Positions 2,012 to 61,016 are shown, counted from the first letter of the stretch. The stretch: 64,000 nucleotides of DNA from Hyaloraphidium curvatum SAG 235-1 (GCA_025558095.1 JAIVFI010000007.1:186001-250000); one strand, 5' to 3'. A program made the numbers and translations. The notes: a model not told the origin generated them from the letters alone.

Positions 2012-3000
2012 TCACTTGACGGCTTTCTCCCTGAGCTCGTCTTGCTGCGCAAACAGCATCGAGATCCGAGCCGCCTCGATGTCGGGCGGAATGGCGTTGT
2101 GCATGGCCGACACCGCCCGATCGTAACCGCCGCAGAGCGAGGCATTCGACAGCGCGGGCCCGAGCCTCCTGGCGGCTTCGCTGTTCTCGGGCAGGCACTT
2201 CCCGCAGAGGCAAACGTGGTCGCAGGGGCACGGGTCGCCGCCTTCGGTGCGGCACGCGCGGTCCCCGGGGCAGCCCGCGGCCTGCCTGGCCGGGAACGGG
2301 GCCGCGGGCCGCAGCGGCTCGAGGTCGAGGCCGGGCCAGCACGTCGACGTGGCGGCGCATTGCCCGGCGGGGGAGCAGCACCGGCTCGCGCACTCGGTGG
2401 CATTCGACGGCGTGCAGACGGATCCGGGCGGGGCTCCTTGGCCCCGCGGGAAGCACTGGTCGGAGTGATGGCAACGACCCTCGAAGCAGCAGCCGGAATC
2501 GCACTCGGTGAAGGTCGATACCTCGCACTTCGGGGGCCGGGTGAGCACGGGGACTGCCCGGAGCGGCCTCCGGCACCCACCCTCGCGAGATGGTTCGAGC
2601 GCAAGGCGCCCCAGCAGTCGCCGTGCGGGGCGCAGCGGCCCGCGACGCAGCAGCCGGAAGAGCACTCGCGGTATGTCGAGTCACCGCACGAGGCGTTGTG
2701 CGCGGCGCCGCGGACCGCGGCCAGGGGCGCCAGCGCGCTGCGGCACGCTTCGTCCGGCAGGCACCGCCCAAACAGGCAGCATCCTGACGGGCAGTCTGTC
2801 GCCAGCGTGCACGGCGGGTGCGGCGCCGTGGCGGAGATGGCGGCGCCGACCGCGGCCTCCTTGGCGGACCCGGCCGCCGGCGGGCGCGCGGCGCGGGAGA
2901 GGTCGGGCAGCGGCGGCTGGCGGCGTGCGATGGCGACGCGACGAATCGCACAGAGGCGACCGCAGCGATGGCTTCGGGCCACCGGCAATAAGACGGCGAT
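2012..3000 (-). CDS. Cysteine-rich protein with four C-x(4-7)-C-x-S-x-CC-x(4-5)-C-x5-C repeats; start uncertain
   Basis: Two ORFs joined by a 53-nt intron 2580-2528 (GTGGGT...GCTCAC...AAG), giving LAR|CEVSTFTECDSGCCFEGRC; repeats DCPSGCCLFGRC, ECSSGCCVAGRC, ECDSGCCFEGRC, ECASRCCSPAGQC. Confidence 0.65.
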
Positions 3001-4066
3001 GAAAGGCCGCGGGCCTTGGAGGCCGGAAAAAGTCGCTTTGGGGCGAGAGAAGGAAGTGGGAAGTAAACGGGTCCCCCACACAGCCCGACCATCCGATCAC
3101 CGCGCCCCGTACATTGCATCCGGCCACCGCATCGCCTCTCCAAGCCACGCCTTGCAGCACAGTGGTCGCTCAAGCCTTTGAAACCCGCTGGTACCGGGAC
3201 GGCCTACAGGCTTTTTCACTCGGTGGTGAGCTCCGAATCAACAAACAGAAACGGTTCGCAACCCACGCAAGTCCGGGCCGAACGCGGCCGAACCGGTCCA
3301 CAGCTCCAGATCAGGCGTCGGAAGCTTGGGCTGCGATTAGCCGGAGGTCGTGAATGAACGCTTCGCTCTCAAGGTCGAGCAAGTTCCCGCAGCGCCCCCT
3401 GTCCGCGTCCCCATTCCCTCCCGCCTCGACGATCCACGCCCGGACATACTGTTGTTGGACATTGTCCATCTGGCTGTGCACCGAGCGCACAACTTGCGGT
3501 GCACCTGCCGCCCGGCGTCCCCGCCGTCGAAGTTGGCGAGCTCGCCCCGCATGTCTATCCGATCCTCGACACGTCCCGGTCCGCAATCGGAACCGTTTTG
3601 AAGGTATGGTGCCGGCTTCTTCGGCTCTCGTTCGGGACGATGAGGTTCACGGAGGGGAGGCCGCCCAGCTGAACCGCATAGGCAGCCGAGTGACGTCGAA
3701 TCCCTGCCAATCACCGTTGGCCGGCCCCTCCTCCCCTCCAACCTCCTTCGCAGCTCTCTTCATACTGTGGAGATGATCGTGGTGCTCTGCCGCCCCGCGA
3801 ATCGCGCTGTGCAGCGCACCAGAGCGGTGCACGCGCGCACCTTGAGCTTGCGGGGGACATGAGGCGACCATTGCCGATGCAGCACTTGCCGTCGAGGCAT
3901 TGTGCCACAGGCTGTGGACCGGCTCGTCTTCGGTTGGTCTCCGAACCGCATGAGGTTCAGGGACGCTCTCGTCGGAGCGCGGTCCCTTGACTTGGCTGCT
4001 GCGTCACACCCGTCCCTCATCCCTCAGTGATCCCCCAACGCCACTTCCCCCGGCCGCGCCCCCGCC

Positions 4067-55881: not shown

Positions 55882-56814
55882 ATGTCACGAATAATGTCGC
55901 CGTCGATGTTCCGGCCCATCTCCTTCTCCATGCCTGGCATGGCGCCGGCCCCGAAACCTTCTCCACGCCGCGTTCTGTTCCCCCCCGCTTGCGGCGTCGG
56001 CTCCTCCGTCCCGCCGTGTCGCTCGCTCCACGCGACGCGCCAAGCCCTCTCCTCCTCCTCTTCCACGAACAATGGTGCCCCCGATGTTGACTTGGAGCAG
56101 GTGGACGGGTCGGTCTCGTCGCGCTTGCCCCCGAAACCTTCCGTCACGGAGATCCTGGACGAATCGGAGATCGTCGGGACCGAGGTGGACGACATGATGA
56201 CGTCGTTCAAGGGCGCGAGCCAGGTGCCGTTCCCGAAACGCGCGGCGGACGTGCTTTTGGCGCCCATAAACGAGGACGACGTGGAGATGCTGCCAGGTGG
56301 TCTTGCTCGTGCGGAATGGGGACCTGGGAGGGGCGTTGATTCGTTTCGTGCCAGATGGCACTCCATACCTGCCCGAGATTAAGTTCCGGCGGATCTTGCT
56401 CAAGGCCTTCGGGCCCGGAGGTTGGGGCCTCGTACCGAGAGGGAAGCACACCCTGGTCGGCAAGAACCTGAGCCGGGAGTACGCGCTCTTCGTCCAAGGG
56501 CGATTCGTCAGCCAAGCGAGGGGCGAAACGGTTCGTTCGCTTGTTGGAAGCACCTCGATTGGCCAAGATCGGCTGATCTTGCACCTTTGCTCGGCAGGAC
56601 ATGCAATCTAACAGCATGACCCTGGCGACGGCTGCGGAGAGCGTACGATCGGACGCGCTGAAGCGCTGTTGCAAGGACATTGGGATCGCTTCCGAGTACG
56701 GTTTGCGATTTCATTTTGATTGGAGTTCATGCTTACCTTTCCTTTGTCAGGCTGTGGGATCCTGTCTGGACGCGGAAGTGGAAGGCCAAACGGGCGACCT
56801 TGAGCAGACGATAG
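55882..56814 (+). CDS. MGM101: Mitochondrial genome maintenance protein Mgm101 (Rad52-type); 3' end approximate
   Basis: LLAPI..DDVEMLP|DGTPYLPEIKFRRIL.KAFGPGGWGLVPRG, REYAL, ARGE, ALKRCCKDIGIASE|LWDP. Confidence 0.92.
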
Positions 56815-56951
56815 AGAGACTCATGCATGCCCAAAAGCTTTGTGTCGTATGTGATGACGGCGCAATCGGCCGCGCGGCCTGCCGCGGTGATGAATGGGTG
56901 CGTCGATCAGGCTCGGGGGGGTCGCGAATAAAAACAAACATTGACGCCACC

Positions 56952-58040
56952 ATGCAATCGAGCCTGGTCCGGGCAGCGATGCCCCGTTTCCCCGTGCTGT
57001 CGCGCTTAAGAAGCTCCTTGCCGCGATGCTCCGTGCCTGCGGCAGCTCGTGCGCTCTCCGCGACCCCCCGGGCGCTCCAAAAGGCGGACATGAAGCTCCT
57101 CGCGCAGCTGCGCAAAGACACCCAGATTTCGATGTCGAAGGCAAAAGAGGCGCTGCTGGCGACCAACAACGACTATGCCGCCGCTCTGGCTTGGCTGGAA
57201 AAGGACGCGGCCGTGTCTGGTGCCGCCAAGGCCTCCAAGCTCGCGGGGCGCGACGCCAACGACGGCCTGGTCGGGATCGTCATAGGATCCGCTGGATTAG
57301 GCGGCGCCATCGTGGAGATGAACACCGAAACGGACTTTGTGGCGAGGAATCCCATATTTTCCAGCCTTGTGACGCAGGTCGGCGCGACGACGCTGTTCCT
57401 GCACTCCGTCGGGGGCACGACCGCGGGTGATCGGGTGCTGCAAGAGGTCAATGCCGAGGAAGTGCTGGCCTCGCCCTTGATGCCGCATCCGACCGCGGAA
57501 ATGGACGGGGATGCGGCGCCGGAAACGATCAAGACGGTCTCAGAGAGAATCGCCGAGGTCGTTGGCAAGGTCGGCGAGAACATCAAGCTCAGGAGGGTGG
57601 CTGTGGCGGGCGGCAGGGTGGAAGGCGATGTTCTGCAGCTCACGGGCGGCTATGTTCACTCGACCAGTTCGGACGGGGCTCCTCTGCAGGGCCGGATTGG
57701 GGCCCTCGTCGTCGTTGACGCCAAGGGCAAGGCCGCGGTCGTCCACCGAAAGAAGGTGGCCCAGCTCGCCAAGAATCTGGCGCAGCACATTGTCGGGTTT
57801 GCTCCCAAGTACGCCGTCGAGGACGACGTGGACCGCACTGCGATCCCGGACGAGGTCCAGCAGCATGTCGGGGAGGATCCCGCGGCCATGGATCGCTATC
57901 TGGACGAGGTTGTACTCGCGCGGCAACCGTTTTTCCTCGGCGGCGGCACTGTTGCCGAGATCCTGGCGCGGACGTCCGAGGAGCTTGGGGTCCGCGTCGG
58001 CGTGAACGGTTTCGTGCGGTGGGGTGTAGCGGAGGAGTAA
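56952..58040 (+). CDS. TSF1: Mitochondrial translation elongation factor Ts, intronless
   Basis: LLAQLRKDT...MSKAKEAL, GRDANDGLV, VEMNTETDFVARN, KVGENIKLRR, LAQHIVG. Confidence 0.93.
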   Translation: MQSSLVRAAMPRFPVLSRLRSSLPRCSVPAAARALSATPRALQKADMKLLAQLRKDTQISMSKAKEALLATNNDYAAALAWLEKDAAVSGAAKASKLAGRDANDGLVGIVIGSAGLGGAIVEMNTETDFVARNPIFSSLVTQVGATTLFLHSVGGTTAGDRVLQEVNAEEVLASPLMPHPTAEMDGDAAPETIKTVSERIAEVVGKVGENIKLRRVAVAGGRVEGDVLQLTGGYVHSTSSDGAPLQGRIGALVVVDAKGKAAVVHRKKVAQLAKNLAQHIVGFAPKYAVEDDVDRTAIPDEVQQHVGEDPAAMDRYLDEVVLARQPFFLGGGTVAEILARTSEELGVRVGVNGFVRWGVAEE

Positions 58041-58212
58041 TCCTCGGCGGGATCGGCTTACGGCGGCGAGTACAAACTGCAGAAGGGCTCTAAACTTCTG
58101 CAGTGTGGACTAGCCGAGAGCAACGCTGGCGCTGCACTATCTCGAATCTGGGAGATCAATTGACAGGTCGATGCTGGTACATCCTCACTTCTGCTGTCCT
58201 TTGCCTTCGTAG

Positions 58213-60049
58213 TCATCCACAAGAGATAGCTGCTGCGAAGCCGGCGCCCCAGGTCGGGTCTGCCAAGTCAGTGCGATCGAGCGTCCGCGATTCCCTGGCG
58301 AAGAACTCCACATCCTGGCGCAGAAGACGCCGGCGGATGTACATCGAGACGTGGATGGGAAGATACGTCGAGTTCCCCAGGCTTGACGTGATGCCGGTGT
58401 CAGAATCAAGGAGATGGCCAAGCTTGCCCATGGGCTCCCAGCCCCATAGGCCCAGATCTCTGACCAGCGAAGCGAACCCACTCTGCACAGCAGGGATGTG
58501 GTTGGGAAGATACGTCGAGTTCCCCAGGCTTGACGTGATGCCGGTGTCAGAATCAAGGAGATGGCCAAGCTTGCCCATGGGCTCCCAGCCCCATAGGCCC
58601 AGATCTCTGACCAGCGAAGCGAACCCACTCTGCACAGCAGGGATGTGGTTTCCTTGCGTATGTGCACTCGAACTTTGACGTCGGTCTTCGTCAGGTCTCC
58701 GCTTGTAGATAGCCCGATGAGCACGCCGAGATTTCGGTTATTAAAATCGAACCTCGCCTTCAGGACGAAGGCGTCCTGGTCAATGGAAAATGGAACATCC
58801 CTTCGGATGAGGCCGGAAGAGTTGGTCGGTACAGGAACATGAACGATCGTTGTCCAGGGGGGCAAAGTGCTCTTGAGCGCGGAGACTTCGTTCTGCGACT
58901 GCGTCGCCATCCAGACATGACCACCGAGGAGGAAGACCGCGAGCAGCAGGACCACGATGCACGCCAGGGCAGCGGTGGCGGCCGTCTCGAAGGACAGTTT
59001 GCTGACGACGACCATAACTGTCTGCCAGATGCGGGTGACGGTCGAGGCCTGCAAGGCAGCCAGAGCCGCCTGACCCTTTGCGAGCTCTTCGTCCTTGGCC
59101 TTGATCGCCGCTTGTAGCTCCCCTATCTTCTGGTCGAAAGAAGCCTTCGGCACCGTCGAGGCTCGGAGGGCCGCGAGCTCGGCCTGCAGGCTCGAGACCA
59201 CGAGAGACTGGCTTCGTTGGCCGCGTCGGTATCCTGCTGCAGCTTGGCGTACGCGGCTTCCGCCTGCTTCAGGTGCTCCTGCGCCGCATCACGCTCGTGC
59301 GTCTCGAGGGTGTCGAAAGCGCCCTGAACAAAGAGGAGTCAGGGCCGGCAAAGACGGGAACGGTGCCAAACGAACCTGGTAGCCGCAGTTGGGGAAGTGG
59401 GGACATTTGACGATCCGACGCGGGCACGCAGCCAGGTGGCCAGTCAGCTGCTCGCGGAGCACGGTCTCCGAGCAGCCTTGGTTCGTGCACGGGACCGGCG
59501 CCTTGGGGCAGGACTCTTGGTGCTGCGTCATGTTGCCTCGTCGAATGTCCAGGCCGCAGCCAGCGAAGGCGCATTTGACTGGAAAGCTGGAGCACGTACC
59601 GTAGTGGGCCTAGAGGGGGCAACGAATGAGGCTGACGCAAGCTGGAGCGATGCCTCGGCGCCATACCAGAAGAGAGTCGGGAGGCGACACCGTGCTGCCG
59701 CAGAACGAGCAGTGCCGCGGGCACATCCTCAGGTGGGCGTCGATGTCACACATCTGCACCGACGCTCCGCACCCATCCGGGCAGGCAACCGCGGCATTGT
59801 TGTATAGAAGCTTGAGGGTTTCCTGCGGGCTCGCGAGAAGTGGGACTAAGAACGCCCACGGCTTGCGGCAGTTCGGGCAGGTCTTTCCACTGGGTCCGTT
59901 CTCGCTCAAGGCATGCCTTACAAAAGACGTGGCCGCAGGCCTGGCGATAGCCCTCCTGGTCGTGGCACAAAAAGCACGGGAGTCGCAGACGGCAAAACCG
60001 GTCCGAGACAGACGGTACACGTGAGCCAGGCCGGGTCCGCCATGGCCAT
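58213..60049 (-). pseudogene. TRAF-like gene: RING - TRAF zinc fingers - coiled coil - TM - MATH-like domain; four 1-nt frameshifts (pseudogene or sequence error)
   Basis: CTVC..ACGHVFCKAC..CPNCR RING; CPDGC..H..MC, C..C..H..TC, CAFAGC..H..SC, CTNQGC..H..AC, CPHFPNC..HE..HL fingers; introns 59666-59610 and about 59375-59324; ALACIVVLLLAVFLL TM; WGW...LLD..TG...L.IHV MATH-like tail. Confidence 0.75.
58356..58650. repeat. Exact 147-bp tandem duplication (2 copies: 58356-58502, 58503-58649)
   Basis: Identical sequence tgggaagatacgtcg...gcagggatgtggt repeated; gives 49-aa repeats in all open frames. Confidence 0.95.
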
Positions 60050-61016
60050 GTTTGGAGCCCTCGCTCCACTTCGCGATGTGCCGCAGCCGCCTGTCGGGAC
60101 CAGGGAAGCGATGCGCAAGTCCGGGGAAAAGCGTTGCCGCGGCGTGACGGGCTGCACCGGTCCGGGACGGTGCTCGGCGTGCTCATGATTCGGGAGCGAG
60201 CTGGAGGCAGGATGGGCCGGCCGGCGACCCGTCCAAACCCGTCCCCCATCTTCCCCATCGGACCTCGGACCGCGCGGTCCCGCAGAAAAGAATATCGTTA
60301 CCTTCTATTCAACTCCTCGCGTTGTACGAAGATGCGCTGGCGGTCGAACGCAGCCGGGCGCGTGTGGCCCAAACGGCGGTCGCGCGGTCCACGACGGCGT
60401 TGGACGCGCCGGGGGCAGCTCGCGACCAGAGTTCTCCATATCGTGCGGCAGCTGCCGAGAAGGCTTCGTCGATCTACTCGGCTCCGCAGGAAACTGGAGC
60501 GCAGATCAAGGTCAACATCGCGAGCGTCGATTGGTGCTCACCTCGACCACCTTCGAATCTTCGAGAGGGAAAGTCTCGGTCCGCCCGACCAATCCATAGT
60601 CTGCAACTCTGCAGCTTCGAACCAATTGGAATCCGAGATCGGACGACTGTTGTAACCTGACACCAAGCTCCGGCCGTGCTGGCGTTGATGACCTCTAAAC
60701 ATGAACAGGCCCCGGCCGCTGCGACGAGAACGTAAGCCGAAGACATTCTATATCAGAGGAAGCGTAGTATACGATCAAAGCGAAACCCTTTGCCTTTTGC
60801 GGGTCCTGAACGAAGCAGAGTATCGAGCAACGCAGATGAGGACGATGGGGACGGTCGCGTGGCAGAGAATCCCAAACACACCGGCGGAACTAAGTGCAAT
60901 CTTCCAGCTCTCTCGATCTTTTCGTCTTACGAATGCACTGCAATATCCGTCCTGTCCTCGGGGCGGGGTGATGATGCGCGCTGCGGCGGCGCGCCAAATC
61001 CCCCAACACTGGAGTG

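Follow-up and report, generated by a model that had tools for sequence, protein, structure and literature searches.

TRIM13 and TRIM59, which consist of a RING, a B-box, a coiled coil and a C-terminal membrane anchor, are precedents for a ligase that is tethered after its coiled coil, and the meprins are a precedent for an extracellular MATH domain. Neither joins both features in one chain, and TRAF-type fingers are absent from both. We know of no TRAF with a membrane segment between the coiled coil and the MATH domain. Meprins are peptidases of the membrane, and their MATH domains cluster with the TRAF ones; a few fungi are known to carry MATH-bearing TRIM37-like proteins (PMC3503706). In Dictyostelium, over 40 TRAF-like proteins have been predicted, 16 of which possess a RING, a zinc-finger and a TRAF domain (PMC5758549). 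When we searched the literature for chytrid-grade fungi with TRAF-like proteins, no paper was returned.

The locus described herein belongs to Hyaloraphidium curvatum and lies at 58213-60049 on the minus strand of the window, a 64,000-nucleotide stretch (contig C7:186001-250000) of the 32-Mb, 55-contig genome. When read conceptually across its frames, it comprises a RING, about five TRAF-type zinc fingers, a coiled coil, a 23-residue hydrophobic segment and a MATH-like tail. This domain order had been proposed in a sequence-only reading of the window, and both translation and homology to paralogs confirmed it. The same reading had gone on to suggest a membrane-anchored receptor and E3 ligase in one chain, a function that is unsupported for this locus. 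Instead, the locus is very probably a transcribed pseudogene of a species-restricted, high-turnover TRAF-like family, and its sequence may be what remains of a membrane-anchored member.

The domain order of the family is that of animal TRAF6 and TRAF2. A profile of the N-terminal regions (alignment A2) found the RING and fingers 1-3 of TRAF6 as its best solved match (E = 1.5e-9), and by layout, as read from sequence and models, the H. curvatum proteins would be placed with the TRAF-type ligases. Unlike animal TRAFs, the tails of the family go undetected by the Pfam MATH model and the family has been found in one fungus only; the window copy differs further in being broken and in the hydrophobic insert that parts its coiled coil from its MATH domain. 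As in Dictyostelium, the TRAF-like proteins of H. curvatum form a lineage-specific expansion outside animals (about 20 zf-TRAF loci, at least eight MATH tails), a likeness at the level of layout. In contrast to Dictyostelium, the host is a fungus of the Monoblepharomycota and many of its copies look damaged. A fungus, a host outside animals and amoebae, has a family of considerable size in which the TRAF layout is complete; both the Pfam MATH model and the public annotation miss it, and its existence bears on the age of the TRAF architecture.

Domain layout and reading frames

Three-frame translation of the minus strand over 58100-60300, together with comparison with the paralogs, showed that four frame changes are required to read from the RING to the tail (Table 1). 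Homology to the paralogs passes from frame 2 to frames 0 and then 1 in exon 1, and from frame 2 to frames 1 and then 0 in exon 3; the maximum of third-codon GC (GC3) tracks this path exactly. The first frameshift is contained in a short T run, the third coincides with the move of the GC3 maximum from frame 2 to frame 1, and the fourth (frame 1 to frame 0) sits at the upstream edge of a tandem duplication. Apart from the frameshifts, the conceptual reading is free of in-frame stops and its codon periodicity is still strong, which argues that the decay is not ancient.

Table 1. Coordinates of the locus and of two relatives on the same contig; positions are those of the window unless a contig interval is given.
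Feature	Position	Strand	Remarks
Start ATG	60047-60049	minus	earliest ATG of the transcribed stretch
Exon 1	59667..60049	minus	RING split over three frames, TRAF-type finger 1 and half of finger 2
Frame change 1	near 59966-59972	minus	
First-AUG ORF stop	59918-59920	minus	43 codons from the ATG
Frame change 2	near 59880-59910	minus	
Intron 1	59610..59666	minus	57 nt; GT..AG; in-frame stop inside; spliced in X1 contig 4
Exon 2	59376..59609	minus	TRAF-type zinc fingers
Intron 2	59324..59375	minus	52 nt; GT..AG; position conserved in paralogs; retained in X1 contig 4
Exon 3, start	59040..59323	minus	end of last TRAF finger (H-E ... E-H-L), coiled-coil region, frameshift 3
Frame change 3	near 59190-59210	minus	
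Hydrophobic membrane-like segment	58914..58982	minus	23 residues, frame 1
Coiled-coil end remnant and MATH-like N half	58653..58895	minus	frame 1; from paralog-tail profile and alignment A1
Frame change 4	near 58645-58655	minus	
147-bp tandem duplication	58351..58650	minus	49 codons, within the MATH-like domain; TRF
MATH-like C half	58213..58503	minus	frame 0; stop codon 58213-58215
L024 (encodes P0006)	C7:257000-262000, gene at ~2250-3066	minus	beyond the window; distance to the window gene 14 kb
L025	C7:150000-154500, 1578 to ~2660	plus	closest N-terminal relative of the window gene

Exon 1 opens in frame 2 with the motif D-P-A-W-L-T-C-T-V-C, which is 68% identical to L025 across 25 residues. 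The frame-0 piece carries the C-G-H-x2-C-x2-C part of the RING, as found by tblastn against the paralogs, and the frame-1 piece contributes C-P-N-C and the first fingers (52% identity to L025, E = 6e-19). All eight ligands of the C3HC4 RING that had been read here are indeed present, but they are spread over frames 2 (CTVC), 0 and 1 (CPNC). No single frame holds a complete RING, and the Pfam RING matches to the frame-0 piece were weak and all under the cut-off.

Exon 2 matched Pfam zf-TRAF (PF02176) over two stretches (E = 3e-16; score 60.3 bits, cut-off 27) as well as zf-TRAF_2 (E = 3.8e-8), which bears out the TRAF-type zinc fingers assigned earlier, and it is 43-46% identical to the paralogs L025, L024 and L030. 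Intron 1 holds the same position in the MATH-bearing paralogs, after a PP-x-T-x-E/Q motif, and lies slightly earlier in L024. At the other end of the gene, TRF resolved the duplication as 2.0 copies with a period of 147 that are 99% identical. The terminal W-x-x-A-P-F of the family is degenerate in the window copy, and the frame continues for 7 codons beyond it.

The MATH-like tail and the membrane-like segment

Pfam gave no MATH match on either piece of the window tail, nor on the tail of an intact paralog. We also compiled a hidden Markov model of eight paralog tails from which the window copy was left out. This profile matched the N half of the window tail in frame 1 (profile positions 57-112, E = 1.8e-4) and the C half in frame 0 (positions 125-196, E = 1.5e-8), with positions 118-162 matching twice because of the 147-bp duplication.

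An AlphaFold2 model of the paralog tail at L015, calculated from alignment A1, reached a mean pLDDT of 86 and a pTM of 0.80, and comprises a helix that passes directly into the first strand of a MATH β-sandwich. A Foldseek search of the PDB with this model returned the MATH domain of SPOP and the TRAF-like domain of USP7 (E ~ 5.6e-6, probability 1.0). In VIA-align, the model superposed on USP7 with a Z score of 12.3 (rmsd 2.6 Å over 125 residues) and on SPOP with 11.8; the TRAF-C domains of TRAF6 and TRAF2 followed at 10.7 and 10.3, so that the fold is slightly closer to the MATH domains of USP7 and SPOP. The sequence profile of alignment A1 likewise matched the SPOP MATH domain (E = 6.9e-6). 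A feature search of the ESM Atlas pointed to CYHR1_TRAF_C and MATH clusters at 0.85-0.87, which is under the trust level and serves as a lead only. The profile matches and the fold comparisons support the assignment of the window tail as a diverged member of the MATH-fold family, interrupted in the middle of the domain and partly duplicated; it would be MATH-like because it is homologous to paralogs that model as MATH. The MATH resemblance noted previously is in this way supported.

Upstream of the tail, the strong hydrophobic helix that had been noticed was equally evident in our analysis. Its mean Kyte-Doolittle hydropathy is 2.91 over 19 residues, against a classical threshold of 1.6, and no other segment of the window gene exceeds 2.3. 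GC3 over this stretch is 0.85-0.88 in frame and 0.42-0.65 in the other frames, so that the stretch looks shaped as coding in frame 1. This codon signature is of the coding type. The segment probably belonged to the protein before the gene decayed, in which case the copy would be what is left of a membrane-anchored variant and not a receptor that works. We considered whether the region might be a mis-framed coiled coil, and rejected this, as the other two frames are without similarity to the family and GC3 peaks in frame 1.

The segment sits in an insert of about 55 residues (~58896-59035) that has no counterpart in the MATH-bearing paralogs. In alignment A1, the N-E-V-S-A-L-K-S-T-L remnant of the window copy and the strand that follows it align to the end of the coiled coil and the first strand of the paralogs. 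In the paralog alignments the helix-forming region adjoins the first MATH strand; in the window copy it does not, the hydrophobic insert intervening. No second DNA copy or donor of the 165-nt insert was found in the genome. Intact paralogs with the same placement of a membrane segment, which the sequence-only reading had led one to look for, did not emerge: the segment is absent from all eight aligned MATH-bearing paralog tails and from L025, and no comparable hydrophobic stretch was detected in the 17 family loci scanned. Moreover, in the window copy itself the segment is out of frame both with the RING and fingers (frameshift near 59200) and with the second half of the MATH domain (near 58650). 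A segment of this kind between coiled coil and MATH is seen here in a dead copy only.

A TRAF-like family with intact and damaged copies

Across the genome, 23 zf-TRAF matches were identified at about 20 loci. Tails homologous to that of L004 occur at at least eight loci, including L004 itself, L010, L015, L016, L017, L018, L019 and L020. The MATH-bearing loci have in common both intron positions and the order RING, fingers, coiled coil and β-rich domain; their coiled coil runs straight into a V-V-R-I-P-I-G-Y-K-G-S strand, and the C-terminal end reads E-P-x-W-P-x-A-P-F.

By analogy with TRAFs, intact members would act as TRAF-like E3 ligases that oligomerise via the coiled coil, with the RING recruiting an E2 and the MATH domain binding peptides of partner proteins. 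Copies that look intact are L004, L017, L018, L025 and the gene for P0006. Among the MATH-bearing paralogs on contigs C16 and C9, several look damaged when judged from the assembly. In L015 the frame changes within finger 1, and the public model of this locus, P0004, also drops 55 residues of the MATH domain; half of the RING of L016 has been lost by deletion; L020 has an in-frame stop downstream of the RING; and L021/L031 and L022 are fragments only. The public models P0004, P0005 and P0008 contain model introns that remove parts of the RING or of the MATH domain. Turnover in the family appears high, with several copies that look damaged.

One of the paralogs searched corresponds to the public model KAI9021781, a hypothetical protein of H. 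curvatum (Monoblepharomycota). Word-indexed searches, limited in length and word, with the L015 tail, alignment A2 and P0006 returned proteins of H. curvatum only, which suggests that the family is species-restricted as far as searches insensitive to distant kin can reach. The remark that this architecture is untypical for fungi agrees with that result and holds within the same reach.

The closest relatives by N-terminal sequence, L025 and L024, lie on the same contig as the window (Table 1). In L025 a RING is followed by TRAF fingers and then by a long coiled coil, with neither a MATH domain nor a membrane segment behind it. L024 encodes P0006 (DFJ74DRAFT_765440), an intact annotated model of 248 amino acids, in which a RING, zf-TRAF fingers and a short coiled coil are followed by a polybasic K-K-A-R-M-K-K-K-E-K-K stretch, a hydrophobic segment of 18 residues (Kyte-Doolittle 2.58) and an end of 36 residues, with no MATH domain. 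P0006 resembles the window copy in its D-P-x-W-L-T-C motif, which marks an N-terminal subfamily, in the RING and fingers (38-46% identity) and in having a membrane-like segment after the coiled coil. It differs in being only 248 residues long, in its short coiled coil, in the polybasic stretch ahead of the membrane segment and in the absence of MATH. Between the two hydrophobic segments there is no sequence similarity that would point to a shared origin of the anchors.

P0006 is a candidate membrane-anchored TRAF-like E3 ligase, and H. curvatum plausibly has intact genes for membrane-tethered TRAF-like ligases. That the window locus, before its decay, encoded a true single-pass membrane TRAF, with the RING and fingers in the cytosol and the MATH domain beyond the membrane, is a tentative proposal that we hold to be rather unlikely. 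If it did, then the locus and P0006 together would imply that membrane-tethered TRAF-like ligases arose in an early-diverging fungus, with receptor and adaptor in one chain, and an intact copy might persist in other Hyaloraphidium isolates or elsewhere in the Monoblepharomycota. For experiments, the intact genes for P0006, L004 and L017 are tractable.

Transcription of the locus and its possible products

The sequence-only reading had treated the four indels and one copy of the duplication as errors to be corrected. As an independent check, we aligned contigs from two public H. curvatum runs, one RNA-like (X1) and one DNA-like (X2), to 57900-60400; such contigs display the dominant form only, with minor alleles and isoforms hidden, and the data are those of one strain. 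X1 contig 4 (1488 nt) covers 59666-60165 and 58621-59608 with 0 mismatches and 0 gaps relative to the assembly, and all four frameshift sites are covered identically. X2 contigs are identical to the assembly over 58691-59429. In addition, X1 contains a 59-nt unitig at 58474-58532 that is centred on the duplication junction and has the size expected for junction-specific 31-mers; together with the TRF result, it substantiates the 147-bp repeat that had been described. Since the contigs match the assembly at all four sites, the frame changes are real and not assembly errors, and the indels and the duplication belong to the organism.

The joint in X1 contig 4 at 59608/59666 (CT..AC on the plus strand, depth 41) skips exactly the 57 nt of intron 1, and the contig therefore derives from spliced RNA. 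The window locus is accordingly transcribed, at moderate depth in X1, and a spliced transcript, which had been a proposed check, does exist. Over 58621-59608 the same contig is unbroken, so that in the sole RNA-like contig seen intron 2 is unspliced. Both of the GT-AG introns that had been proposed thus stand at positions shared with the paralogs; intron 1 is removed, but intron 2 is retained in the contig. The two halves of the gene likewise do share a transcript, as had been supposed, in that one RNA-like contig spans the RING to the first half of the tail, but the frames within it are broken. An intron of 38 nt or 185 nt that would remove frameshift 4 and one copy of the repeat was also considered; its putative GT donor, near 58669 and just upstream of the repeat, is poor, and X1 contig 4 is unspliced over it, and the candidate was rejected.

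On the pseudogene reading, the window copy has gained four frame changes of the one-nucleotide class, the 49-codon duplication in the MATH domain and a displaced stop. The mRNA is present and lacks intron 1, and translation that begins at the first AUG stops after 43 codons, so that no chain from RING to MATH is produced. The proposed one-chain receptor and E3 ligase founders on this point, and from a dead gene at this locus no new receptor is to be had.

The public annotation cuts the locus into two models, P0007 and P0001, and the locus might accordingly encode shorter functional products, for example P0001 with an N-terminal membrane anchor, or the RING-less P0007. We judge this improbable. 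P0007 is a partial model of 142 amino acids with a zf-TRAF match (E = 1.1e-18), whose model intron splices out the RING because it thereby avoids the frameshifts; no joint in X1 within 59666-60165 supports this intron. P0001 is a 276-residue ORF that begins at an internal Met and continues out of frame into the duplicated tail; about half of it is MATH-region sequence translated in the wrong frame, present twice owing to the duplication, and its start codon, on the same transcript, is about 1 kb downstream of the first AUG. The region is transcribed and the frame-1 ORF is open over 338 codons, but GC-rich DNA here often has long open frames. A HMMER search with the piece comprising coiled coil, membrane segment and N half of the tail against 1.84 billion cluster representatives retrieved its own ORF model and two spurious low-complexity or coiled-coil giants, and no homologue of the ORF.

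Still less probable, and in our view a slim chance, is that a working single-chain membrane TRAF is made here from an intact second allele or by recoding. The conceptual domain order does read through, the segment is strongly hydrophobic with a coding-type GC3, one RNA-like contig joins the RING and the first half of the tail, and the same genome has in P0006 an intact candidate for a membrane-anchored TRAF-like ligase. Against this, the assembly, the RNA-like contigs and the DNA contigs all carry the frame changes and the duplication in identical form, with no variant reported; four separate recoding events in one mRNA are not known to have a precedent; the duplication would put 49 extra residues into a β-sandwich; and the X1 contig keeps intron 2. 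The least probable explanation, that the gene is in fact intact and that its frame changes arose as errors when long reads were assembled or polished, could draw on the short T run at frameshift 1 and on the single frame breaks seen at assembly level in other paralogs, but it is largely eliminated by the base-for-base agreement of k-mer contigs from two other runs at the four sites and the duplication junction.

The preferred reading remains that of a transcribed pseudogene; the damaged look of other family copies speaks for it as well, and the lack of further in-frame stops, the strong codon periodicity and the moderate depth of transcription speak against it. It carries a caution, namely that stitching frames over indels can turn a pseudogene into an attractive architecture.

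Two further observations concern the flanks of the gene. At position 60354, in the upstream intergenic or leader region, X2 is one base short relative to the assembly (one contig, depth 5.9), and X1 has the assembly sequence. At the downstream side, X1 contig 1 (2356 nt, depth 217) extends from a convergent EF-Ts-like gene (ORF 56601-58040, plus strand) to 58385, past the stop of the TRAF-like gene, so that the two converging transcription units overlap at their 3' ends.
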